A model generated the notes under the pieces. It ran no database searches, had not been told where the DNA came from, and saw only the letters and a program-made list of their open reading frames with translations. Positions 7,601-40,360 of a stretch of 64,000 bases of DNA are shown here, piece by piece (the first letter of the stretch is position 1; each line of letters opens with the position of its first letter). The position numbers and the translations under genes were made by a program. Source of the DNA: Paragordius varius (taxonomy: Eukaryota; Animalia; Nematomorpha). The stretch spans positions 13,020,001 to 13,084,000 of the forward strand of contig OZ176050.1 in the NCBI GenBank assembly GCA_964247055.1, read 5' to 3'.

Positions 7601-10600
7601 TTGATAATGAATCCCGATTTACATTCACATGAGTAAGAATTATCTTTATTAACGCAAGTCGAATAGGCCGGACACATTATATCTTTGCATGGATCATCGC
7701 CTTTTATTACAAAAAATAAAATTGTCAAATTTTAATATATATATATATCAAGCAAACATCACTTAACATTCATAAATTTTTTTTATATATTCGTAACTGG
7801 AAATTTTTTCCAATATATACTTTTTAATCTAAACAAAAGTTACAAAATAGTGTAATTTTTGGCAATTAGATTTTTCATCTTATATAGATATCAGGATGTC
7901 ATTAAATAATAATAAAAAATGATTTTTTTGCCTTTAAAACAATAGTTAAACAGTTGTTTTTACCAAAGTTTCTAATTTTGCTTTGAGAGGCAAATCGCAG
8001 GACTTGTTCACGCTGATCATATACGGCGAAATTTCTTGCCACGGAAAGTAGAGAACTTGTGGTGCCTATAAATTTTTTCATTGACAATTAGAATTTTTAT
8101 TATATTTGAAATAACAATAGTTTCGGATATCATAATGAAGTTCCATTATCAATAATAAATATCAATTTAAAAATTCGTAAATACTATTGGTTTTTGCGGC
8201 AGCTTCATACAATTCCGGACATTCTGCATCAAAAGCTATTTCTTGTGAAACAAAATATGCCCTTTCCTCTACCCCAGTCAATCCCGTGATTCGGAAAATA
8301 AGTTTGGATTGGGAATTTATGCGACCTAAATGATATTTTAACTTACAGTAAGATCAATAAATGATTATCACGAAAAAAACAAATGAATATCCTTTGAAAA
8401 AAAAATGATTAACACATTGTTTAATTGGATAATCATTTGTTTTTTTGTTATAATCATTTGATGATATTACTGTAGTATAAAGCTATAGTTTCGAATTTTT
8501 AGATAAAAAAACAGGGGTGTAAGTCCGGTTTTGATTTTAAAATTTAATACTCATTTTTGCTTTACGTTTTGTCCGTATAATTTCAATTTTTACTGTAATA
8601 TTATTGATTATATCCACCGTGTGAAAAAATCTTTTTTTAAAAAGGGTTAATATTTTTATTCAAATTTCTAATTTTGCAACGTTGTTATTTGCCCATTTGG
8701 CACCACCTTGTCATACGTCCGGCGCTTAAAAGGCTTAATGTGCAACTGTACAGACATATGAAAAAAGTAATTTTAACCTGCATCCACTCTCACAAATTCT
8801 TCGACGTAATCCAAAAAATCGATTTGATTGTGACTCTCAAAACGGGGCAAATCTCCCACCACTTCCAAATCCATCTTTAAATTTCCATAAACATCAGGTC
8901 CGTGGAAGTATTCTTTTAAATCCATCTGTTCATTAGTGCCATCAAAGTTTATGGTGGTTGTTCGGTTAAAGACACCCCCTATTTAAATTAATAATAGGTA
9001 TTTATATTAAAAAAGTTAACATAAATATAATGCTAAGATTTTTGGTATAATTGAATTATGCAGGGGATCGGAGTGAAAAAATATTCATTTCATACAACAC
9101 AAATTGCGGCAGCGTGAGTAAACAACAGGATGTTTTTTTTAAATTTTAATTTCACCAGTCTCAATTTTAAAAATCGTCCCGATTCCGTTGAATCCTAAAT
9201 TATTTTATTATTTATCTCAACTTTATGTGGGTTTTTGTCAAAAAAAGCACCGGAGTATTATAGATAAATAATGTATAAAATATAACAAAAGTAAGGCGAT
9301 TATCCAATAAAATAAGATTTTTAACCATTTCATCTTACAGGTCATTTTTAAACAAGTCGTTTCTATTTAACTGCATTATCTTCTATGATTTTAGTGATGG
9401 TATAGTAGGTAGACCACCAGACTCTTACGCTGCGTTCAAGAGTTCGAACCCCGAAACTACGCAATTTTTCCATTATCACTGTCAGCCCTGTTCAGGCAGG
9501 CGAGTGTTAAAGCCTTCACATGTCCGTATACAATGTAAGTCCTTACCCTTTAATAAAAAAAAGGAAAAAGAGACTCTAAACTGTATGTTATTATCTAGAA
9601 ATACCAGTTAAAGAGAAGCCATTGGAGACGTTTGTCGAACCACGTGTGGCAAATAGCCAATTGATAGAATCTGCGATTGGCAGCAGCAGTTTCATATTTT
9701 GACTCAAGTTATGTGGTATGCCACTCAGAGCTGTATACATTCTACCATCGACGGATACCACGTATGAATGTAATTCAATATTTTTCAGTGGTTGTCCATT
9801 CACTAAACCACGGAGAAGACCGTTTATTCTCAAGGGAGTTTCTGAACAAAAACAGGCAGAAATCTTCTTATAAATGTTTTTTACGGTAAGAAAAATTATA
9901 CGGACAGTTGAAAATATAAAGACAAATATTTTTTTCAAAAACACTACCATACTTTTTTAATCTCCATTTTTCAAGTATAATTCATTGTTTTAAACTACAA
10001 AGTAGATTATAAAAATGTCAATTGGTAACACAAAATCAATTATGTATTTTACAATTTTAATTAAATGTTTTTTATAGGATAATTTAAGGTTTTAAAAAGT
10101 ATGGTTGTCTTTGAAAAAAAATTTGTCCCTTTATTTTTACATTTTGACCGTATAATTTCAATTTTTACTGTAAATTTTTTAACCTAAAACAATTAGTTGT
10201 AAAATTTTACTTTCTGCTACACAATGGATCCCATTCCCAAAGTATTCTGGCTTACATTGGCAACAAATACCTGTCGGCTGAACATTTATACAGTGAGAAT
10301 TGATAGGACAACTTTGTTCATTACATTGATCAGGTCCGTCATTATCTCCCATTAGCAGTGTACTATCTAATATACAGTAGCGTATGGCATAAAACATTAT
10401 TAGTCTCCATAAAAGAATAAAAAATGTTGTTTTTATAAAAAGAAGCCTAGTTGAATATACGCATATCCATAATATCCCCCTATTTTATTCTTTAATGACT
10501 AATATTGTTTTATGTCATACGCTACTGTACAGTAAGATAGAAAAATCATTATCACGCAAAAACAAATGGATATCCATATGAAAAAATGATTATCACATGG

Positions 10601-17573: not shown

Positions 17574-20500
17574 ATGGGTACATCAAAACGCAAAAGTAAC
17601 GGAGGCCGAAAATCATCATTGGCTTATCATAAAGTATCCCATTTATATGACACTCGCGACACTTCAGGTATATTACGAAAATTTGATTTTTAAATTTTAT
17701 TTTTTTTTTATAAAAAATATTTTGAAATTAATTAATAAATATTTTTGGAATACATGGCTCAACAGGGGTTCCTGATATGGTTTTACTGGAAAATTATCAG
17801 TCCGAGGATGCTTTTATCGCTAATTTGAAGATTCGTTACGACAATGATATTATTTACGTAACTAACAATTTTTATTTAACTCTGAAAGCGTTAAATATAT
17901 AAAATTAAATAATTTTTTCCAAAAAAAAGTTAAATTTACATATGTATTATAAATACAGTTAAAATTAAATTTATACGGACAAAACGAAAAAATATAAAGA
18001 CAAATATTTTTTTTAAAAGACAACCCCAAACTTTTTGAATCTAAATTTTTATAATGATAACTCATTGTTTTAAACTATAAAGTAGGAAATCAAGTTGTAA
18101 ATTGAGAACACAAGCAATTTATGTAGGATACGATTGAAATTAAATTATTTTAATATAAATTAAGATTTAAAAAAGTAGAGTTGTCTTTTAGATAAAAATA
18201 TTTGTCTTTATATTTTTACTTTTTGTCCGTATAATTTCATTTTTTATATTTTTATTTTGACATATTCATAGACGTACATTGGTTCTGTCCTTATAGCTAT
18301 AAATCCGTACAAAAATATTCCTATTTACTCGCCCGAATTTATAAATAAATATCGTGGGGTCAATTTGTTTGAGATGCCGCCTCATATGTAAACATTTTAT
18401 TTTTATTACTTTATTTTACATTACTTAAAACTATTATTATTAATCCGATTTCTATTTTAATGCGAGATAATTAAATTTTAAATAAAATAAAGGTTTAACA
18501 TACCCAATATCTTATAGTTGAACCTTATTCGAAATAAGGTTAAAAGGTTTTTATACATTTTTAAAGTTATGGAATATCTTTAATTTTAACAAGTTTTTTA
18601 ACTTAGTAAATATTTTAAATTAGCGACATTACGATATAGGGACTTTACTTATGGTTAAAAAGTCTAATAGATAAAAACATAAATATAAAATGTCAGCAAG
18701 TATAGATTTTTTGTCCTTGCTTAATAAATCCCATAAAAAGCATAAACCCGCTTTCAATCTTCCATCCTTTTCAATAATATAACTGTTAATTGTACGATCT
18801 ACCTTTTTAAATATCAAAAATGGAAAAGTTACATATCCTTAATTTTTATTTAAAATTTTTTTTCATAATTCAAATAGATTTGCGCTATCTGACGTGGCCT
18901 ACCGTGCCATGATGGCCAATCAATCGAATCAAAGCGTTTTAATTTCAGGTGAAAGTGGAGCTGGAAAAACCGAATCTATGAAAAGAATAATTTTATATAT
19001 TGCCGCCGCTTCTCATCACACACCTGAAGTTGAACGCATAAGAGAAAAACTTCAAATATCGGTACCTGTCCTTGAAGCCCTGGGTAATGCTAAAACCAAC
19101 AGGAATGATAATTCGAGCAGATTTGGGAAATATATGGATATCCAGTTTAATTATATGGTGAGTGTTTTTAGGCTATTTGTGAACTTTTGGGTTATAAAAT
19201 TATGCGATTTGAGAAAATTGAATATATATTTATGCAGACAAAACGTAAAAACACAAATATAAATATTTGTTTCCCAAAGACTATACTTTTTTAACCTTGA
19301 TTATTCCTATAAAGTTTATTTAATTATAATTGTAAAGTATATACTACTTTTCAATTTAAAACTATAAGTTTACTTAAAAAAATTAAGCTTAAAAAGGAAC
19401 AGCAGTCATTGGAAAATATTTGCCTTTATGTTTCCAAGTTTTGTCTGTCAAATTTCAATTTTCACTGTATATATATAGGGTTCCATTGTCGGTGCCAAAG
19501 TTACCAGTTATTTGTTGGAAAAATCGCGTGTCGTAAACCAGAATAAAGGTGAACGAAATTTCCACATATTTTATCAAATATTCAAGGATCCAGCCATAAC
19601 TGAAGCCCTCTTACTGGATTCGGAACCCGGAAATTACCATTATATTATGCAGGTATTACAGTGATATCTTAAAACATTACGCGTTTCAACTAATTACTAA
19701 ATAGGTATGTTTGAGTTCAAAATAAAAGTATATTTAAATTATATCTCAAATTTTATGGTATGGCCACCGATTAGTTTGCTAATAAATCAACAATTTTTAT
19801 TGGTTTAAACCGTATATTGGACCTTATTTTTTTGCTTTTATGGTGTTTTAGAGGGAAACAATAACGGTAGCCAGTTTAGACGATGCCAAAGACCTTAAAG
19901 TTATCCGGGAAGGTTTTCGTTCTTGTGTATTAACTATTGACGAAGAAAACGTAAAGATTATTAAATTTATTTACCGTTAAAATTGATATTATACAGTCAA
20001 AAAGTAAAAACATATAGTCAAATATTTTTTTTAAAAGACAACCATTCTTTCTAGCCTTTCTTATATTGAAATTTAATTGAATCTAATAGTAGTTCTATGT
20101 TATAGTTAGTAAAAATCAATGAGTTATATTTAAAATATTATAAAAAATATTTGTCCTTACGATTTGTCAATTTTATTATTTAGAAAAATATATAACCACA
20201 CTAAATATGTTTTAGGCACTGTTTAGCGTTATAGGGGCCATTTTACATTTGGGTCAGATAGATTTTGCCGAAAAAAGTGGAAAACTTGAGATGACTAAAA
20301 CTGAACACCTGGAGTACGCTTGTAAGGTATCAATATATAAAATAGACCAAAAGTTTGTTGTGTATGAAATACAATATATTTTAGAATTCTCAAAAAAAAT
20401 TAACCTTTAATATTTATTTTTTAGCTGCTAAATTGCCCTCAAGCTAAAATGTTAAATGCCATGCTTCATCGAAAAATTACCAGTGGAAGGGAAATGGTAA

Positions 20501-23500
20501 GTTTTACCTCTTCGCTTTTAATGCACAATTAATGGAAAAATTCATAAAACGCAAACTATTAAAAAAGATTTAAACGAAAAAATTGGCAAAAAGATTAGAA
20601 TATTTAACCAAATAAAAAATAAAAACCAATTAAAAATAATCTAATGAAACAAGCTCTAGTATAACACAGATTTCTAACTGTTTTTATTGGAATTAGAGCC
20701 AAAACCACAAACCCTTTTTTCAGAATCCTTTCGGAACAAAAAAATTCAAAAACGATTGGAGCACGGTTTTGAATTATTTGGAATTACGCATATTTAATAT
20801 TTTTAATATTTAACACAATGTTAACCTTATATATAAAGCATGAAAATTTTGGGGTTTTTACCTTTATGTGTTGTGTTAACTGTCTCAACCAAAAATTAAA
20901 ATAACGGTTTAAAAATGTGAAACAAAAATCAAAACCATCTAATCAAAAACAATGGAACTGGTAAATAATCTGTTTTGGTTAGAGCCCAAACAATTTTCCA
21001 GGCCTTCCAAAATTTCTGCGGAATGTTGCTTCCAGTTTTTGGAAAAAAATTTAATTACACAAATTTTACATTTGACCAATAAGCGCTCAAGCATTTGTGA
21101 CTTCTGGTGCAGTTTTTATTTAAGTTAATAAATATATATATGTTTATATGTTAAAATCTCAAATTGGCGTCACTTGATAGCGTTTCTTGCATATTACCAA
21201 CCTATATAACCGAAAACCCATTTATTGTTATTGAAATAAATATTTAGACAATTGCGAATCTGACAAAATCGGAAGCATATTATGCTCGTGATGCCTTGGC
21301 CAAAACCATTTATGAAAGATGTTTTCTTTGGTTAGTTGAACGCCTCAATGCAAGTCAAGCATGTCAAGTATAATAATTTTTGGCAATATACAGGTATTAA
21401 ATATAATTTATATTTAAATATAAGTAATTAAGCCAAAAAACCGATATGGTTAGCTAACGACAAAATTATATTAATTACAGTAAAATATTATATTATACGG
21501 ACAAAAGGTAAAAATAGAAGACAAATATTTTTTTTCAAAAAAAGTTGTTTAAACTGATTGTTTAAATGAAAAAGTATGTAGATATGTACAGTAACTGAAA
21601 TTATACGGATAAAACATAAAAAGATAAAGTCAAATATTTTTTTCTAAAAGACAACCATACTGTTTAAGATTTATATCAATATAACTCATTGTTTAAAATG
21701 GAAAAGTGTGAAATAGAGATACATAATACTAACACATCAATTCCATATTTTAAAATTGTAACTAAATAGCTTATATGAAAAAAATTAAGATATTAAAAAT
21801 ATGGTTGTCTTTTTGGCTTTATATTTTTACGATTTGTCCGTATGATTTCAATTTTTACTGTATATTGGTATCAGCTTTTTTACAATTTCAATTTAATAAG
21901 TTGTATAGAAAAAAATTAAGGTTTAAAAGAGTATGGTTGTCTTTTAAAAAATATTTGTCTATATATTAGGATTTATCTGTAAAATTTCATTTTACACTGT
22001 ATATATATGGTTTATAGATTGAAGGCGGATATAAATGTAGATTGGGACTGCTTGACATCTTTGGATTTGAAATATTTACCCTTAATAGGTAACATTAAAT
22101 GTTTCCTACCTAATAAATCACAACCAAAATAATAAATTGCTATTAATTTCAGTTTTGAACAATTATGCATTAATTTTTGCAATGAAAAACTCCATCAATT
22201 ATTTATTGAGAAAACGCTGAAGGAAGAACAGGAAGATTATATGAGGGAAGGAATCGAAGTAAGAAGTTTTAAGTTCATTTACACAAATAGTATTTATTGT
22301 TTTATGTGGCTACATTTTTTTAACCGTTTTATGTTTAAAATTTGATTGATATTACATAAGCGTCTTATCAATCAATATTTTACCACATATTATTTAAATT
22401 GTGAACGCTTTAGCCTTGAAAAAAAACTTGGAATATCCATTAAATTAAATCATTTTCAATCCATTTGCAGATATTTATAATGTCAGAATGTATTAATTTT
22501 GTTTCATTCCAGTAATAATCATCGTTAATCATTTATTTAGTGGATCCCGATCGAATATACCGACAACACTCCAATCTGTTTACTGCTACAGGGATCACCT
22601 AATGGAATTTTATCCTTATTAGTATATACACATATTATAATAAAATTTTGATTTAACTTAAAGCATTTAAGTAATTTTTAATAATGTCCATAATATTAGG
22701 ATGAAGAATGCTTAATGCCTGGAAATCGAACTGATCTCACTTTACATGCCAGGTTTCAAGATAAACTTAAGGAGAATAAGGCTTTTGCGACGCGAACCGC
22801 AGGTGGTTTAGATAAGGAGGCTCGTAAAAATTTGAAACCTGATGTAAGCAAAAATTGAAATACTACGCTTTTTCAATGTTTTATTGCTTACTAATTTATA
22901 ATTAGAAAGTTGGGTTTTTAATCCGTCTGAAAAATAACTGGGGTTAGAGGTTCATGAAGACAATCAAGGGTTATAAACCGTCAATAAGAATCACTAAGCG
23001 TATGCATGTTGCAATTAATAAATTAAAACTAATTTAACCCTTAAATATGTTTCAATAACGTATTTAATATCTTTTAACAATAATTTAATAATTTTTCTAC
23101 TTTTTACTATTCGTAATTTTAAAATCAGGTATTTATCCATTAAATATTTCAGTTATCTATAAAACTCATGTTTTATTTTATTGACTGGTCAGTAAGCAAT
23201 CAGAACGTCATGAATGCGTTTGCAAATGCATCTGGCCTAATCTAACCATACACATATTTATTGGACTTATTTACGGAAACTTTTTTGTAGAATTGTCCAA
23301 TTTTTACCTCACTGTCATCTTAAATATTTAACATTTTGTAAAAAAATTTATACCTTAAATGAAAATTTCTTAATTTATTTATAAATTTATTTAGGAATTC
23401 AAAATAAAGCATTATGCTGGAGAAGTGGTTTACAGTGTCGTTGGTAATTTTTATGTATATTTTGTATATTTATTAAATATATATTTAATGGATCTTTGTT

Positions 23501-26500
23501 TTTTAATAAATTCAATTTTGCTAAAAAATACAGGACTTGGAACCAGTAAAAATTTGACAGCTTTTTAAATTCGAACTGATTTAAGTTCAGTTATTTTGTT
23601 TTTAACAGTCTTATAACAGATTTTTGAAAATGGAATTTTTTATTTATATCCAAAAATTAAATATAGCTTCAGTTTGCCTCATAAAAAGAGGGCAAATCCG
23701 ATTTTTGTAAAATGACTTATTGTTTCAAAATAATTTTTTTAAATAAAATAAACTGTAGTTAATAAAAAATGGATGATTGGTCTCGACATTTTAAAATTTT
23801 TTAAGTCGAAATATAGTATATTTCATAAAATTTTGCATAACGCAAAATAAGTATTCAATTTTAAAAGTATAGGGAAGGGGTTTTAAAGTGGTTATATAGA
23901 GCTCTATTCGATACTTATTCGCCTTAAGCCAAATGTCTATAAATATTTGGTTCGCAACTAGTTCCAGTATATTGTTTTTGTTTTCTACACTTGTGGTTTT
24001 AGCAATAATCAAAAGATTTATATTTTGATAATCTGATTTTAACTATACACGCACACTATTAATTTAACAAAATTTATCAAATAAAATAGGGTCTGAAGTT
24101 TAGATTCAATAATTATTATCAATAGCAGTTCAATTTTTTTATACCAGATTTACATTTTTTTTCAGGGTTTATGGATAAAAATAAGGATTTACTTTTCCGT
24201 GACATCAAAGAAATATTGTGCGACAGTAAACATTTGATACTCAGTGCAATGTTTCATAAAGATGAATTGGATGATAAGAAGCGACCTATATCGGTAGCTA
24301 TATTTTAAGCACCATTTCAATTGTATTTGAAATTCTATATACAATTCCATTTATTACCAATAGGTCGGATTCCAATTCAAAACAAGCCTGGAGAAATTGT
24401 TAACGACTCTTGAGAAAGAGGAATTGCATTATGTGCGCTGTATTAAGCCCAACATGCAAAAGATTCCTGGTTAATATATTATTGCATGCTAAAAGTTAAA
24501 TTATTTAATGATATTTATTAAATTTATTAGAGACTAATATGGTAATTTGACGAAAAAGTAAAAGATGGGATAATAATCACTTTTTACATTTTGTTTGCAA
24601 AAGTATTTCTTTACCAGTATTGACTCTTTTTAAAAACTTATTTCATATTTTACATATGTAATCAAAAAATTAATACAAATATTAAATACCTTTAGATACA
24701 CTAATAAAATCTCCTTTGTTTGGGGACAATGACAATAAATTTTTACCAAAAATATATTCAATGTGCTTAATTTAGATACATTTGATGAAATTACTATTCG
24801 ACACCAAGTAAAATACATGGGACTGGTAGAAAATGTTAGAGTATGTAGAGCGGGTTTTGCATACAAAAGGCCATATGAGTTCTTTCTTAAGAGGTAAATA
24901 TCATCAAAAATACTTTACACCTCGAATTCGCCCTTGAATATTTTTAAATTATTTCACCATTGAACAATATAAATTCACCATATATATAGGTTTTGTGTTT
25001 TAAAAATCAGAATTAACATATATTTTTAATGTTTTAAATAAATGTTGTTTTTAAAAAAACAACAGAAGAATGATAAAGTATGTTATGAAAATATATGAAT
25101 ACAGATTATTGTTACGAATTAGAAATGTTCAAGAGTGATTTTGAAATGTTATAAAGATAGATTTGATATGTATTTGAGGTGTCTTTGTATAAATATTTTG
25201 TTTTTAATGATAATACTATATGTCCAGGTATTACAGTATTTGCCCCCTAACTTGGCCTAAACATTACCAATATTCGGCTACTGAGGCTGTTGATATCATA
25301 TTGAAACATTTTAAATATGTCGATGGTACTGATTATAAATTTGGCAAGACAAAAATATTTGTCAAATCGGCTTGTTCCATATCGGATTTGGAGGCTTTAT
25401 GCGCAAAGCGAAAGATTGAGCTAAGTAAATCATATATAAAAAAAAATTTACGTCTTTTAACCTTTTTCTAACCTTAAGTTTTTATTTTGACATCTAGTAA
25501 CATTAATACAAGCCAATTGGAAACGATATCAAATTCAAGGCCTGTGGAACGATCTAAAGAACTCAGGTAGTTTATAGAGCTTTTGACTTAATAACTTTAT
25601 TATATATATTTTACTAATTATAATAGTGACTTTCATTCAAAAATGGATAAGAACTTTTTTGGCTCAACAGAGGTTGGAAGTAAAGAAAAAAGCTGTTCTA
25701 CGCATACAAAGGTATCCTTAAGACATTTCTTTTGATCAGAAAATTAAAAGTTTTAGCTTTGCCTCTAATAGAATGATGGAGGCAATTATTAATATTAATC
25801 ACTATTTATTTAAACAGCTTAAAATGGTAATGTGCGACATTAATTGATACTATGTATTAATCAAGAGGCCTATAACCTAATTATCATTAATAGGTTTTAC
25901 GGTACCGACTTTATTGTTGGCTAATTTTAGTAATATAAGAGCGCATGGTATGAAACATTCGATTAAATAATGTTTTGAGAAAAAATTGATTTCAACCATT
26001 TGTTGATTTTTACCCATACTTTATTGCAGTGGTACTCAAACCGCGGCTCTAAACGTGCTTTATAGCCCTGAATTTAATTTAATTTATGCATATCTATTTA
26101 GAGTATATTTATCTGCATATGAAATGATTATGCAATATTTTTGTCGGTATTATACGGTGAATCTTGAGGCGAGAAAACTAGCTTATGCTGAATTATCATT
26201 ATAAGTTTAATATCATGCGAAATATTACAAATTTATTTAGTTTTTTTATCTCACAATTAGTCGCCCCTAAGACTTTTCATATCATTCGGTATGCAGTTGT
26301 TTATAACATTTTGAAACTTAATTAGAAAGAATCAAAGCCGAAACCAGTTTTGATTTAAAAATCTAGTGGCCTTTTTAACTATATAGCTTGTAAATTACAG
26401 ACGGTTCATATCATTTTAAAAAAGTTAAACTTATGTTCATATGCTATCAACGTTTGTTACGAGAGACGTATGATATTTCTTTGTAATTGTCAAACTGTAA

Positions 26501-29500
26501 TTTTTTAGATGTCGTTCACCAAAAAAAATACTTTACATGACTCTCTCGGAAAATAGTAATATTTTATCCAGATTAGTTATTTCATAAATTATACCATTAC
26601 TTAGATTTGCCAAGGGTTGTTTGGACATGAAAAACAATCGGACAGAAACCGAATTTTACAAAGATGTAATTATTTTCATGGTATTTGGACAATAGTAAAA
26701 AATATTTGCATAATTAAATATGCAAAACTAATATTTTTTCAAGATTTTCGCTGCCAAATGTCAAAATTACATTAAACGATTATTGGAATGGGCTCAATAC
26801 GAAACCACCCGTGAAAGCCTTAAAGATTGGCCCAAGCCGCCAGATTGTCTAAAAGATGTATCATTCTATTTATTCGTATAAATACAGTATAGGATTTTAA
26901 TGGTTGCTTATTTCACACTATAGGAGGGCAATTTGGAACTCAGGAGTGTATGGAAAAAAGAAAGGAAATAATTGTTTATTCAACATTTTGTTATTTTTTC
27001 CATACACGACTGTGTCGCATATTGCTCTACTATAGTCTAAAATAAGCAAATTAAAATGTATACTGTAATTGGAATATTTTGTTTCAACTATATATTTAAT
27101 ACATTTGCAGTTTTCCGAAGCTTTAAAGAAGTCATGTGAAATAATATTACAAATGCAAGAGAAACAAGTATGTTATTGCCTTGAAATTTATTTAACCGGG
27201 GGTGGAAACGGAACTGTTTGAGAAACCAGGATTAATTAAAAACCCCTAAAGCAAAGCAGAAAATAGAAACGGTTAAACAGAACCGTCGCGGTTCCAACCC
27301 TAAAAAAAATGAATTTTTTAATATTGTTTAGCATTTTTATAAGATACAAAAAAAATAATATATATTTTTTTTTCAGAGAAAAGTAGCATATAATGTATTT
27401 TATTAATTATTTATTCACATGTGCCAAAATACTCAGGCTATATGTATTCTCAGAAAAAATAAACCCAACTGTCAACATTTAAATCAAAAATGAAACCCAA
27501 ACCGGATCCACTTATTTGAAATTATTATAAATCCGATATCGGAAAACAGTTCCGGTCGAGTCTCTGTTTTAAATTTCGTATGCATTATTTTCTAAATTAT
27601 TGTTTGTTTTAGAAAGAGTTGATGGAAAAGGGCCTGGTAAGAACAATAATTTTGCATAATTTTTAAAAGCATGTAAAAAATGTGAATTTATAAAATATTT
27701 TTCAGATTCCGCCTGAGGAATTAGGAAAGCAGATGAAAAAGGAATTAACAGATAAGGAAGCAATAGCAAAGGAACTTTCCAAGGAAAAGTACCAGGCTCA
27801 GAAGGAATGGAGTGACGATCAGGACCAAGTATACATAAATTAATGAAAACTGCCAACATAATTTTTTATAGTTTTTACTTTTATAAAAGTATCTAAAATC
27901 TAAAAGACAATTTTACTAAAAACAGACAGCCATACTTTTTTCCTTTTTAATATAAGTCAACGTTTTGGGTGCGAAAAGGTGATTACAGATGCAAATCGTT
28001 TCACACATCAATTATACGCATTCAAACTGTAATCAAATAGTTTACATAGGCGCAGCATCAAGGTCTAAATAAGTTTGCTTGTTTATTTACAAAAAAATTG
28101 TTTTTACTCCATATTTAAATTTTAATTTTTACTGTCTATTTTTGTTATACCACAGTATCATATAATTTTATTATTTTTATGTCTTTGGGAAAAATTTAAA
28201 TTTATTTAAAACACACATTGTAGTTTGAACAAGAATTTGCCTTAAAATTTGAAAAACTACGTCGCCAACTGGCAACGCAATTCACGCAACTCCGATTAAA
28301 ACTGGTCAATAAAACATTAAAACATGATCGGGAACTCTTGGAACATTTGTACGAAGTTCGAAGTAAAGAATTGGAGGAACAGTTAAACAAAGTATGATCG
28401 ATATTTAACTTATTTATAGCAGGAGATAAATGCATATTTGAATATATTACATGGTGTGGATCATAAAATAATTTCTCTGGCATAAAATGCTGTTTTTTAT
28501 TTAGGGAAATGTTATTTGATAATGACTATAAATTACCATGGCTGAAATAAAAATCATATGTAAGCCAGTTTGAATATGTTTTTATAATACAAAACATAAG
28601 GATGAATTCAAAATTTATTTAGTATACATTCAATACTGGTAACGCTAATTAGAATAAATCTAACTGTAGTTTTGGCACACCAAACCGATTAAAACAATAC
28701 TATAAATCAGTGATAATCAAACTGCCGCTCTAAAAGTGCTCTTATATGGTCCTGAGTTTTCTATTAAATTTTTTGGTACCTATTTTAAGTATAAATATTT
28801 TTAAATAATTCAAACAGCTATTTTTATAAATATTATATGGTGCACGGCTCTTGAAACTAGATAAATATTTTTTCGGCCCTTTAAATTTTTTTGGTAAGTA
28901 TCACTGCTCTAAACCTCTTAACAAATTAAGATAATTTACTATCCATTAAAAATATACATTTAATCCTGAATGATAAATTATTTTAAATTGCAGTGGCTAT
29001 TTATATGTGTCATTAAAATTAAATATAAACCGGAGTTTATAAATCCTTATATAATTATTACAAGGTCCGGTTATCCTAATCAGAATAAATGGGCAAAGGC
29101 CATATAAAAAATTTAATGCCGACCAATATGCACCAAACAGCTGAAAATAATTAAATTGGCTATAACTTTTTGATGTACAACGCTTGAAGTTTTTATCATA
29201 TAATTAATGATATTAATTATGCAAAAAACTTAAAACATCCCTCTAATTCATTTTGGCATTTTAATTAAAATTTTTTTAGTTTACTAAATTTACAAAATTA
29301 TTACAAACGCTTCGATCAAAAGGTAAATTAATATGGTAAAACATATTCAAATTTTGATATATATTAGCTGTACCCACGATTATGTGTAAAAATCTTTGGC
29401 AAGCTTTCGAATATATGGGCTACACTTAACATAATACGTTTGTTAAAAGCGTATGTAATCTTTTATAATTTTACTCAATATTTTGCAATATGTTTTTTAG

Positions 29501-32500
29501 TAATTCAAAAACGTCCTTTTGTAAAACAAATTTAAATTTTGAAACTTCATTTGGTGTTTTACGCATATTTAAGCATCTCATTTATTATAAATATTAATTT
29601 TAAGTGCCACACTATGGCCAAATTATTGGTAATCAACTGTTGGGCGCATTTCGGTTAGCGTTTGGTTTTTTATGGCGTTTGACACCTTTTTTCGGATTAT
29701 TAAAGCTCATCTTTCATTTAAAAAATTGAGTTACCCAAAATGTCACAACCAACCTCTAAATTCGGCAAACTATGCCTTTTTATATATCCCTTATTTTTAT
29801 GCCTAGACCCACAGAAACCTGCAAAATGTTTTAAATAACGATTGGAAACAGGCAAAAGACAAGGCTAAAACAGATTTCAAAAAACAAATTGCACGCTTCG
29901 AAATTTTGGATAAGGAAAAAGGTCGCAAACTTGATGTCAAACGGATGAAAGAATTGGAATGCGAAAAAGATAAACTCGAAAAGGTATCCAATTAATGTAT
30001 TAACCTCAAGCCCAGATTTAAGAACCATGGAAAGAATGAAATTATCACATATTTTAATTTGGTAAAACAAACATTTTCATAAATTAGAGCCAGGCATAAT
30101 ATTAAAATATTTATAAGAAATACATTATTTTAACACTCCATTACCTTTTAGGGTAGTTTTGTATGCCAAAATGATTTAAAATTTGTGTTAACAAATAGTT
30201 AAGGTATTAACCCAAATTTAAAAATTTACTTTAGATTTTAGGCGCATTATACAAATTTATTTAAAAAAATGAAAAATTGTGAAAAAATCCTCAAAACTTT
30301 TTTGCCGTCATTTTTTTCAATAAATAATATTTAATCGCTAATGCAACGGGCAAATAAATGTATATTATGGTTAGAAAATGTAAATAATTACCTTAAGGCT
30401 TTCAGGCTATATTTTACCGGCACAAACTTAATATATTTTTATTTTTATATCAGCTATTCGTTTCAATCGTTATTAGGAGCCTTTTCCCAATTTTAGACTT
30501 TAGAAGTCGCAAAAGCTTTTTATCTAATACGTGAAAACAATGTTTGATGATTTAATTTTAAAATAACTTTTTAAAACTGGATTGTATTTAAAAAATATAG
30601 CTGTGGGATATAATACTATCCCGTTACCTATGACCAAAAAGTGAAATGCTGCAAAAAACATATATATATTTGTTTAAAAATAAAAAATAGTGCAAAATGC
30701 CACACACGCAGAAAAAATGTCATTTTTACAAAATTTTTAACTAATCGCATGGAAATTTTCCGCAAAAAGCAATTCTCCACAGAATTATATAATAAATATA
30801 CTATGATTTATTGTTATGATAAGTATACACAAATCATAAAATAAATTTTAACTCCTACATTGAGATAACTTAAATAAATTTTACTGACAGGAGTGGCGAC
30901 AAAAATTTTTGGGAGCCATGCGGTCTTGGAATGCATTTAGCACAAACACCTTGGAACCAGAAATTGAACAAGAGTGGCAACATGTTAAGAAAAAAGCTAT
31001 GACATCGTTCCAAGAAAGATTACAAAAATCTTTGCAAGTTGGTTATGTGCACTAAAATAATTTTTATTCATATCGAAAACTGAAAAAAGTTTGTTAGATT
31101 TATGTAAAATTATATGAAAACTGTTTTTCATATCGCAGATTATTGATTTGTAAAATAATGATTTGATTTATGGACACTCTTTATTGAAAAACTATACTTT
31201 TATCAGCAAATTATGTAACTTTTAAAATCGAATTAATTTTAATGTTTAAAGGCCACATATTTTTTACATAATAATTTTATAATATCAGGAATTTTCGAAG
31301 GAGCAAAAGAAACAAAAAGATTTGTTTAAAGCCCAAACGGAATATTTGAAAGAATGCGTTTTCAATGATTATGCTGATGAGCGTTGGCGAATACTTTGTG
31401 ACATACAAAAATCCAACACTAAATCAAGATGTGAATTTGAATCCAGCAAAGTAGAAAGTGTTAACCAATATTTTATGCGACAATCTAATTCGTTGGGTAC
31501 TACTTTGCGGTCAAACCGGGAAAAGGATCAAGTACAATTTATAAAAAAGTTATTCTATCTTATTTTCTATTTGATAAATCTTGTTTTTATCATAAAGGAA
31601 TGGGAAGAATATAATATGCGAGCTTTAGCTGGTCTCAAAATCGACCGAGAAGGTGTAATGAATAGCACCCATCCTACTATGGATAAAGAACATTTAGATA
31701 GCATTAGCACTATATATAATCGTGTAAGACAGGATAAATTTTATAACATTTATGGTTGCAATAAGGTTAAAAATATTTAAATTATTAAATATCCTGTAAA
31801 TTTTATTTTAGTTTTTGACGCGATTAGATGACAATCATGTTTTATCAACCGATAACATATCAGCTGAGGTAAAATTATTTATTTTTTATAAAATATGCTT
31901 AACACAGTTATAAACGGCTTTAAAAATATAAAGTTAAAAATAAAGGGTATATTTTAAACCAAATAACATTAAATATTTAACTTTACATGGGTTTATTGCA
32001 ATTTGGTACACAGTTTCAATTAAATTATGACATATTTGGGATATTTTCGATTAATTTATATGTAATTATTAATTTTAGCATGCAAAAACGGACACAGCTC
32101 AAACAACCAATATACAAAGCAAAAACCAGATTGACGAACAACAAAAACCCCATCCTTTAGAGTCTCTAGACAAGATCACAAATAAAACAACTTCAAGGAA
32201 TAATCCAACATTTTACGAAAGCCTTAAAGTTTTGTTAAATTCCAAAGAGACAGCTTGTGTTACCAGCCGATGTTTGGATGATAAGTTAAGTGCAAATGAA
32301 AATATGTTGCGTATGTTAATTGATGGACCTCATATCGATGGTCGTAAAGGCATTCAAAATAAAATGGATGCAAAAAATTATTCGAAATCTTCAGTTTTAA
32401 CAAACAATTCTATAGATGATATGGAATGCCAGATAAAATTTCAGAAAAATTCATCCCTTACTAAAGATTTGTTCAAGATTCAAAGGAGTGTCAGTGATTC

Positions 32501-32609
32501 ACATTTAAATGAAAATAACGATTCTGCTCCAAACGATAAAAATATTATAAACCAACAACATGCGATTAATTCAAATAATTCAAGCAGCTCACTTACTGTA
32601 CTAATTTGA
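17574..32609 (+). CDS. MYO1: Class I (Myo1c-like) myosin: motor, about 3 IQ motifs, post-IQ segment, then a non-TH1 coiled-coil-like tail; about 1380 aa
   Basis: Motor/neck exons: 17574-17667, 17766-17857, 18272-18387, 18878-19157, 19479-19652, 19852-19950, 20216-20326, 20425-20496, 21248-21367, 22018-22088, 22153-22258, 22541-22621, 22700-22843, 23395-23443, 24166-24293, 24364-24469, 24776-24893, 25228-25424, 25498-25566, 25627-25711, 26605-26665, 26744-26857, 27111-27167. Tail exons: 27613-27636, 27706-27828, 28224-28391, 29807-29983, 30891-31037, 31289-31531, 31598-31723, 31812-31868, 32079-32609. Motifs: [76 protein letters not shown]. Motor confidence is high; joining of the tail is less certain. 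Confidence 0.88.
17954..18246. mobile_element. MITE family A copy (myosin intron 2)
   Basis: TACAGTTAAAATTAAATTTATACGGACAAAACG ... TTTTGTCCGTATAATTTCATTTTT. Confidence 0.8.
19207..19469. mobile_element. MITE family A copy (myosin intron 4)
   Basis: ..CAGACAAAACGTAAAAAC ... GTTTTGTCTGTCAAATTTCAATTTTCACTGTA; left end decayed. Confidence 0.65.
19973..20180. mobile_element. Degenerate MITE family A copy (myosin intron 6)
   Basis: TACCGTTAAAATTGATATTATACAGTCAAAAAG..AAAGACAACCAT; right end decayed. Confidence 0.55.
21476..22001. mobile_element. Nested MITE family A pair (inner copy 21587-21862)
   Basis: Outer TIRs at 21476 and 22001. A complete TA-flanked inner copy sits between them and closely resembles 44784-45056. 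Confidence 0.8.
26902..27050. mobile_element. Foldback MITE family E copy
   Basis: TTGCTTATTTCACACTATAG..GGCAATT ... CTATAGTCTAAAATAAGCAA; homologous to 35227-35412. Confidence 0.65.
27194..27556. mobile_element. Small inverted-repeat element in the myosin neck/tail intron
   Basis: CGGAACTGTTT (27209-27219) and AAACAGTTCCG (27544-27554) form an inverted pair, with AACCG/CGGTT motifs inside. Confidence 0.4.
28708..28906. mobile_element. hAT (Charlie-like) MITE
   Basis: TIR CAGTGATA../..TATCACTG; 8-bp flanks CTATAAAT and CTCTAAAC (6/8 match, decayed TSD). A related left end lies at about 26027. Confidence 0.6.
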
Positions 32610-34049
32610 CATACCTAAGATATATTCATAATAAATTGAATAAACTTGATTTATCTTATTACTATACTATATGGTGTTCAAAAAAAATAGTAATTTTGTA
32701 TGTCCATTATTTAAATGCTGGTGTCAAATATTATTTTATATCATATTTTTTTATCAAGAATTTGAGTAACAAATTACTGTTTTAGACGTAATCGCCCTAA
32801 AGATAAAAATTCTTAATAAAAATCTTTCTAATTTAATTTGTTTAGACTTCTGACATCTGAATACACATCAAATTTTTTGATCGATTAAGTTAGGCTAATA
32901 ATTAATAAAAAAGCAAAATTATTGTTGTTATTTAACTGTTTGACCTTCCTATAGGTCTAATATATCTCTCGAACCCTATTTAAATATAAAGTTTAGTGCT
33001 ATAATTCGAAAAAAAACAGATGCTTGATACGTGTTACTTTAATTATCAAGTTGGCGCACTAATTTAGTTTAATGTAATCATAACTTATTTTATGGATAGT
33101 GTCTAAAGTTTTTACTCTTTCTTATTCTCTGATTTATATATGATAAATAAAAAGTCAAGGGCAATAAATAATATAAATTGGAAATCCAAAATATGAATGT
33201 TTTGAGGCAGGATTTTACAAATATTAATCAATTTCATTTTAGAGTAGATATTACCAAAATTCTTTTTTTGCAGGTATCGAATTAATTTCAAAGTAGCCTA
33301 TTATAAAGGCATGGATTAACTAGATAAAAATTTGTATATTTCTTTGAATAAGTAGAATTTTAATCAACCATCAATTTAGCAATCGAGAAAAATTTAAAAA
33401 AAAATTATCAAAAAATATTTTAGAGGTTATTGAACCTGTGAAGGAAAGGCCTTTTCAAATCCATAAAAAAATTTTTTAGATTGATGCACGACTTTTTTTG
33501 TTAAATTTTATTAATTTTTTTATAAGTTTTATCTTTAATCAAAAATCATTCATTATTTATTAATTACATTTTAATTTATTGTCATCAAAAATGATGGTCC
33601 TTCTAAGTGTCATTTTATTTAAAATGCACATTAATTGTATAAAAATTTAATAATAAATCAATTCAATTTTTACAAGTGTTTTTATTAAAAAAATACGTAA
33701 TTACAAGGGAATAAATTTCAAAATTTATTAATTATGTTACTAATACTTTTAGAGTTCGTAAAATATTAATTCAAGAGATAATTTTTTGGAATTTTATAGT
33801 TGTGTTCCAGTAAAATCCAGAAAAGAAAAAAAGTTCCCTAGTTTATAAATATTTAATCATCGTAGTACATATAAATTAACATTTAATATATTTTGCTCTA
33901 AATTTTTTTTTCAAACGGAAAAAACCATAAATTATCCAGAATAAATTTTCCCTACTTTTGTAAAGGGGTTTCATCACATCAGAATTAATTTGATTTTGCT
34001 TTACTTACAAATAATAATTTTATCATTCAATAAATTTTGTTTTATCCGA

Positions 34050-34996
34050 ATGTTTCGACAACCAAAAAATAATTTGAGTGATTTAAAGTTCTTACTTATA
34101 GTTTACGGCTTTTTACTAATACTACGCTTAAATAATGGTTATTTTATAAATTCGGATTCGAATTTGAGTAAAGATGCTAGTTACTTTATGGAAGGTATTC
34201 CAACTGAACAAGTCTCAAATTATGATGAAACATTATACAAGGATGATATATTGGGCAACATAGTAGATTATGACTACAAACCACCTATTGACAATATTTT
34301 ATCATTCACCAATGACCACAATAATAATTATTTGTTGGAAAAACGGAAAAGTATATATGATTGAAAATTGATTACATAACTCATATATTTGTTTAAATTT
34401 AACTGTAACGTTTTACATTAATAGGCTAAACTATAAATTTAAATCATAAAATATGTCGCGTAAAGAGAGACGAACATAATTGAATTACCCGCAGTGCATT
34501 AACCCCTTTACTGGTCATTGAATTAAACAAAACTTATCGAAAAATAAGCCCAAATTTATTATCTCAAAAGAGTGCATAAAATTTTTACCTTCTATTTTTA
34601 ACCAAATTAAAATTATGCTATATATGTTTTTACCAGCTGTGCATATATTATCAACGATCACATGGCCTAACTACAACCAGACCCCGTTAAAAGGCTAAAA
34701 CATATATATATATATATATATATATACCTAGATGATGATACATAGTTTCTAATTTAAAGCAAAATAAATGCACAACTAACACTTTATATAAGAATTGAAA
34801 CAAATTTGAAAAAAAACCCTTACCTACCCTTTCAAAATAATAATTAATTTTTTGATTTATTTGTGTATTCTTTTTTGCCCAGATTCAATTTTGGATCAAA
34901 CACCAAATATGTAATTCATATGTTGGTCATTTATTTTTGATCAATAAAATTTGCATATAAATCGATTATTATTATTATATTTTTGTATCAAGTGTG

Positions 34997-39202: not shown

Positions 39203-40360
39203 TTCGGAAGTCAGCGTTTTTTCAATTATTACATTCTTAATTCCTGACACACTTTACAAAGCTAATTATAACATTGCATTAGTGGAAATACGCTTACCTA
39301 TATAGGAGAACCATATGAAAAAGCCGAAAGCGGAGAGAGTTGCGTGTGCCCTAGAAATGGGCAATGTTCGACCCAATACAAAGGCCTATTAAAGACATGT
39401 GGTAAAAAAATATTTGTACCAAATATTTTGCTCTATAGAAAGTAAAATTGTATGACTAATTATTTACCACTGGTATCATATGAGTTTATGTATAATTTTG
39501 ACTAAATACCAGGATAATAAAGTAAATACTTTGCTTTTATATGATTGATGAAAGATAAAAATAAAGAAGACAATTACTTTTAATAATTATAAAAAATTTA
39601 ATTTATAATTTGATGGATCAACTTTTGTCAGTTTTTCATATCTAGATTAGTATAAAGCCTTCAAATAATTAACCACATTCCTTTATTTATCTGATTTAAA
39701 GGATAAAATAGATCATGTATGTCATCAATACTATATCTTTACTTAGACCTCTGTAAAAATGATTTTACCAATTGTGCAACATTGTGTGAATGGTATCCTA
39801 GCAACTGTAGTTTATCATGTGACCCCACCTGCAAAGCCCAAACATGGCCTCCTCATAAAAAAACGAATGTTCCAATGACAGTTCCTGTAAGCGATACGAG
39901 AAATGGGAATCGAAATGTACAAAACACTACTACAAGACCTCGAAATCGAACTCGAAAACCTAATAATCGCAATTATAACGGGAGACGAAGACATAGACCT
40001 AAACCCAATAACAGCAGAAATAATGGTGAATTAGATAAAATATAATTTTGTGCACAAACATTTCTTTGTAATATAATAACAGTTAAAATTTCAAACATAT
40101 GGACAAAACGTAAAATAAAGGCAAATATTTTTATATAAATACAACAATTTTATAAACAATTCACATTTTCTACATAAACTAAATATACACATTTTTGACA
40201 TGTAGAATAAGAGTGTTACCAATTTACATATCTATTTTTTATTTTGCAACTCACAAATATACAAAAATCAAGTTGGTTGTCTTTTTTAAAAAATTTATCT
40301 TGTTTCGTTTGGTCTCAATAATTCATTATTTAATAAGTGTTTTTCTCTTCAAAAATATCG

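Follow-up and report, generated by a model that had tools for sequence, protein, structure and literature searches.

In the window (the whole stretch of Paragordius varius DNA that was analysed, 64,000 nucleotides in length), which is AT-rich animal DNA with a GC content of ~26%, an in-frame model of 32 exons and 1391 aa could be spliced on the plus strand, running from an ATG at 17574 to a TGA at 32607-32609. Within this model, the motor corresponds to aa 1 to ~715 and the IQ neck to aa ~720-815, and the last 10 exons (27613-32609; 8 to 176 codons each, ~545 aa) form the tail. AATAAA hexamers are present 3' of the TGA, at 32630 and 32639. The features of the locus are as follows.

17574-26857, plus strand: myosin exons 1 to 22, with canonical splice sites in the in-frame model
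26744-26857, plus strand: exon 22, with the WPKPP motif, closing the block of exons 1 to 22
27111-27167, plus strand: exon 23, the final Myo1c-like exon, with donor CAA/gtatgt (96.9th percentile of background GT sites)
27168-27612, plus strand: linker of 445 nt, either an intron or an intergenic gap
27613-27636, plus strand: exon 24, a micro-exon of 24 nt encoding KELMEKGL and containing the ATG at 27622
27706-27828, plus strand: exon 25, beginning IPPEELGKQ, with an acceptor at the 98.9th percentile
28224-28391, 29807-29983, 30891-31037 and 31289-31531, plus strand: exons 26 to 29, with canonical phase-0 sites
31598-31765 and 31812-31868, plus strand: exons 30 and 31, with canonical phase-0 sites
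32079-32609, plus strand: exon 32, the last exon (176 aa), ending in the TGA at 32607-32609

All 11 exons between 26744 and 32609 have AG and GT borders and lengths that are multiples of three, and all are in phase 0; the chain that the sequence-only reading had drawn through this segment, passing from KELMEKGL into IPPEELGKQ, was therefore verified in its borders, phase, and frame. Stop-free runs in the window have a mean length of 12.9 codons, and a length of 56 codons is reached by only 2.1% of them; against so short a stop-free background, 10 linked open tail exons constitute a chain far beyond chance. From the intron between exons 21 and 22 to that between exons 31 and 32, eleven introns in succession are in phase 0, with mixed phases in the motor part, where 13 of the 22 exons (exons 1 to 22) start in phase 0.

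The class of the motor was assessed by searching Pfam and PDB with single exons. Myosin_head (PF00063) was found on single exons with E values of 7.8e-39, 1.3e-17, and 3e-09, and an IQ motif was found on exon 20 (E 0.0012), with the IQ-like LRIQRVY also present in the model. The best PDB matches of the P-loop exon were Myo1b, MyoIE, and Myo1c, and the sole myosins matched in PDB by the converter exon were of class I, with Myo1c best. Top named matches in the protein database included "unconventional myosin IC-like" and "myosin-Ic," as well as Ib, Id, Ig, and Ih. The best-scoring database matches of the exon-4 open reading frame were 55 to 63% identical and none was more than 72% identical, so that there is no close relative among the database proteins. 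The motor carries LDIFGFE, and all key motor motifs are kept across the 22 exons. The post-IQ block of exons 22 and 23 was aligned with WPTPPPALREASELLRELC of Myo1c, a reference segment identical to PDB 4R8G_E at 73 of 74 positions, and scored 58 (shuffle mean, 20.5; z, 9.2; 0 of 3000 shuffles as good); the post-IQ segment WPxPP...SELLRELC of the Myo1c/h subclass is present. An almost invariant proline follows GKTKIF and precedes the first IQ in class-1 myosins (Kollmar and Muhlhausen 2017, PMC5583752). In the model, the corresponding stretch (model aa 690-745, window 25340-25566, the converter-to-lever junction) is free of proline, and we call the motor a divergent class-I motor. As judged from its predicted protein, the locus encodes an intact class-I (Myo1c/h-like) motor, an IQ neck, and a post-IQ segment. 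Like the short-tailed Myo1c and Myo1h and the arthropod "myosin IC-like" proteins, the predicted product has a motor without an N-terminal SH3-like domain, IQ motifs, and a post-IQ WPxPP..L...SE.L...C block that matches Myo1c of PDB 4R8G, and its best exon-level matches are class-I chains and "myosin IC-like" proteins. Unlike Myo1c/h, it lacks TH1/PH (PF06017) here and carries ~545 aa of unrelated sequence instead.

Sebe-Pedros et al. 2014 (PMC3942036) give TH1 (PF06017) as the tail domain of the a/b, c/h, and d/g subclasses. No match to TH1 or PH was obtained in Pfam for the single tail exons (E up to 1) or for 37 other plus-strand open pieces located between 26.9 and 36.1 kb (E up to 0.1), and the TH1 signature and the FxGDY motif were both absent from the six frames of the whole 64 kb. 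Since pieces of 35 aa sufficed for the detection of Myosin_head, these Pfam scans have some power, even though the motor is better conserved than TH1. The lack of a TH1 exon in the introns and downstream, as claimed beforehand, was thus borne out for the window by both the Pfam scans and the six-frame motif search.

The start of the tail had been described as still echoing Myo1c. When exons 24 and 25 were compared with the start of the Myo1c TH1, a z of only 1.5 was obtained and 9% of shuffles were as good (p ~0.09), as opposed to the z of 9.2 for exons 22 and 23, and the echo is not significant. Exon 25 had no match, to myosin or otherwise, in PDB or Pfam. By these comparisons, detectable myosin homology extends no further than 27167, the very position of the proposed fusion junction.

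We next considered the composition and predicted structure of the tail. The proportion of E, K, Q, L, and R is 46 to 68% in exons 24 to 29, which have almost no Pro or Gly, and 26 to 31% in exons 30 to 32, and the last exon is 32% Asn, Ser, and Thr. Charged residues make up ~46% of aa 847-1010. Exons 26 to 29 (~245 aa) are charged and proline-poor and are probably helical, and the final 176 aa are probably disordered. In single-sequence AlphaFold2 models, which were too poor for a fold search, exons 29 and 30 (31289-31765) were all helix at a pLDDT of 48 and the last exon had a pLDDT of 33 throughout; no beta-rich PH-like fold appeared in these low-confidence models of exons 29 and 30 and of the last exon. 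A "largely coiled-coil" tail, through which the myosin could dimerize, had also been suggested. The a/d heptad register score of the tail, a crude and unvalidated measure in which a periodicity over ≥28 residues was sought, reached a maximum of 4.5 of 8, compared with a shuffled mean of 5.2, and by this measure the claim is unsupported. In being Lys/Glu-rich, proline-poor, probably helical, and without clear heptads by this crude score, the tail stretch after the IQ region resembles the charged single alpha-helices that come after the neck in myosin classes VI, X, and VIIa; unlike those, it belongs to another myosin class and has no known cargo domain after the helix. The charged fraction of typical ER/K helices is above ~46%.

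The coding status of the tail was assessed against DNA contigs from a related species, the run being judged to be DNA and not RNA because its contigs cross introns. Among the sequencing runs found to contain the locus, none was of RNA; of four runs whose reads were compared with it, one gave these DNA contigs and three, putatively of RNA, were empty. In exons 23 and 26 to 28, seven of eight differences were synonymous third-position changes and one was nonsynonymous; in exons 26 to 29, six were synonymous and one was nonsynonymous. Flanking intron stretches were ~5 to 10% different. This pattern indicates that the tail exons are true coding sequence under purifying selection. The micro-exon (27613-27636) had zero differences from the related species, with diverged sequence just upstream. 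We also observed that the 69-nt intron at 27637-27705 had no difference from the related species, the intron just upstream being ~10% different. A 29-nt patch of exon 30 (31642-31670) had eight nonsynonymous and two synonymous changes, owing either to a loop that evolves fast or to poor alignment of the contig.

Searches for relatives of the tail, all at the level of exons, returned nothing. Exons 29 and 30 gave 0 matches among 1.84 billion representative proteins (HMMER), neither Pfam (E up to 1) nor PDB sequences (E up to 10) yielded a homologue for single tail exons, and internal repeats in the tail were no better than those in shuffles. As far as such exon-level searches reach, the tail is without a detectable homologue. 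The likeness to SLK/TAO and PLC-beta that had been suggested for it found no match in Pfam or PDB with single exons; with the C-terminal helical domains of SLK/TAO STE20 kinases and of PLC-beta, the tail shares only a helical, E/K/Q-rich composition.

Whether myosin and tail exons form one transcription unit depends on the linker (27168-27612). Splice sites in and around it were scored by a matrix for which the motor introns served as the training set, and the scores were expressed as percentiles relative to background sites. The donor at 27167 ranked at the 96.9 percentile, the acceptor at 27613 (tgtttgttttag) at the 90.8 percentile, the donor of micro-exon 24 at the 98.6 percentile, and the acceptor at 27706 at the 98.9 percentile. 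The acceptor at 27377 (t9cag) ranked highest, at the 99.4 percentile; the exon that it opens has 9 codons (RKVAYNVFY) and a stop at 27404-27406, and an AATAAA follows at 27458, 52 nt past that stop. An in-frame TAG lies directly 5' of the micro-exon, with an ATG 9 nt within it. The segment 27505-27591 was ~10% different from the related species, and neutral-level divergence continued to within 22 nt of the micro-exon; there was no CpG enrichment in the linker, and a CGGAA (ETS-like) motif at 27540 was not conserved in the related species. Because of this neutral divergence, the lack of CpG enrichment, and the unconserved CGGAA, we see no sign of a promoter in the linker. Neither the ATG at 27622 nor that at 27733 has a purine at −3. 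Strand composition, compared between introns and intergenic DNA, gave no usable signal.

The reading that we prefer is a single transcription unit joining the myosin and tail exons, for which we consider the chances about even. In this unit, the donor at 27167 would be joined in phase 0 to the acceptor at either 27613 or 27706, with nine or ten exons following, giving a product of ~1391 aa with a motor, three or four IQ motifs, and a post-IQ helix, followed by ~300 aa of charged, probably helical sequence and then by a less charged segment of ~250 aa, rich in Asn, Ser, and Thr, the last 176 aa of which would probably be disordered. One gene is favored because an intact motor and neck would otherwise be without a cargo-binding tail, because there is no TH1 or PH anywhere in the window, and because a strong donor (27167) sits exactly at the end of the Myo1c similarity. 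It is further favored because the next conserved coding exons lie on the same strand, in frame, and only 445 nt away, with good acceptors; because the linker has no promoter sign and both candidate ATGs are without a −3 purine; and because purifying selection acts on the tail exons and the unit ends in a stop codon and two AATAAA hexamers. Compatibility of the reading frame says little, since all introns from that between exons 21 and 22 onward are in phase 0 and so are the starts of more than half of the earlier exons. Counting against one gene is the fact that the break in homology coincides with the proposed junction, as is the stronger acceptor at 27377 with its 9-codon terminal exon and AATAAA; merged neighboring genes are, moreover, a frequent source of apparent chimeras.

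A two-gene explanation is less probable in our estimation but a serious competitor. Here, a motor-neck myosin without TH1 would be followed by a separate, lineage-restricted tail gene. The myosin transcript would be spliced from 27167 to 27377, encode RKVAYNVFY up to the stop at 27404-27406, and be polyadenylated after the AATAAA at 27458, giving a protein of ~855 aa; the tail protein (~540 aa, helical and disordered) would start near 27613, at Met 27622, as MEKGLIPPEEL. Such an arrangement would accommodate an acceptor at 27377 that beats the one at 27613 and is followed by a short open reading frame, a stop, and AATAAA, a Myo1c similarity that ends at 27167 with no myosin likeness in exons 24 and 25, the in-frame TAG right before the micro-exon with its ATG 9 nt inside, and a frame compatibility that is uninformative. 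However, it would leave a well-kept class-I motor without a cargo or membrane module, and by our estimate a T-rich intron of 445 nt, with its ~18 AG sites, would have a ~10% chance of containing an acceptor as good as that at 27377. The segment 27297-27495 is, in addition, multicopy in the related species (depth, 15.7 versus ~2 to 4), so that the rival exon is possibly part of, or adjacent to, a repeat. Upstream of 27613, there is neither a promoter-like signal nor conservation, and both candidate start codons are in a poor context.

If the single transcription unit is correct, it would derive from a divergent Myo1c/h-like class-I myosin that lost its TH1 exons. The most economical origin would be the loss of the TH1 exons, together with the 3' end of the gene, by deletion or rearrangement, with transcription then reading into a downstream lineage-restricted gene and phase-0 exons preserving the frame. 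The new tail may replace the lipid binding of TH1 by another anchoring or cargo contact. We infer the splice junction, the origin, and the function of such a fusion from genomic sequence. The chimeric myosin I put forward by the sequence-only reading is plausible: a motor and neck without TH1 are followed, in frame, by a conserved and unrelated tail of ~545 aa. That this tail is a dimerizing coiled coil is not supported by the crude heptad score. Class-I myosins are functionally defined by TH1-mediated membrane binding; within the myosin superfamily, tails have often changed in particular lineages, and heavy gene loss is known for the phylum Nematomorpha. If true, a conserved class-I motor in which TH1 has been swapped for a helical and disordered tail, or in which the tail has been lost, would be an unusual architecture for an ancient class, and the former would be a clean natural case of tail replacement by gene fusion.

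Two further explanations do without such a tail replacement. It is improbable that the locus holds one part of a class-I myosin split by gene fission, with the motor-neck half here and an IQ and TH1 half elsewhere in the genome; the halves would be two separate proteins or would be rejoined by trans-splicing from the donor at 27167, and the downstream exons would be an unrelated neighbor. A motor-neck locus without TH1 and with a strong, unused-looking donor at 27167 would be expected from such a split. Least probable of all is an assembly misjoin that juxtaposed two unrelated loci within the repeat-bearing linker, a reading with which the multicopy state of 27297-27495 in the related species agrees, as does the finding that none of the contigs listed from the related species bridges 27230-27505, but against which two same-species runs contain 83 to 84% of the sampled words of 26700-32650 (though these runs are possibly the source data) and nothing else points to a break.

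Other repeats were observed in and around the myosin exons. At 26880-27060, in the intron between exons 22 and 23, there is a hairpin-like element with the inverted arms GTGTATGGAAAAAA and TTTTTTCCATACAC; the summed contig depth of this element in the related species is ~1441, compared with a baseline of ~2 to 4, with strand-switch joints, and the element has the look of a MITE-like repeat present in very many copies. A dispersed short repeat has eight copies in the window, at 8570, 11160 (minus strand), 11403, 18224, 20152, 21835, 45029, and 55256 (minus strand), several of them within myosin introns. Downstream of the tail exons, the 33- to 43-kb stretch is gene-poor apart from plus-strand open pieces at 33945-34361 and 39272-40042 that resemble a protein with a signal peptide and a protein rich in Cys and in Asn/Arg.
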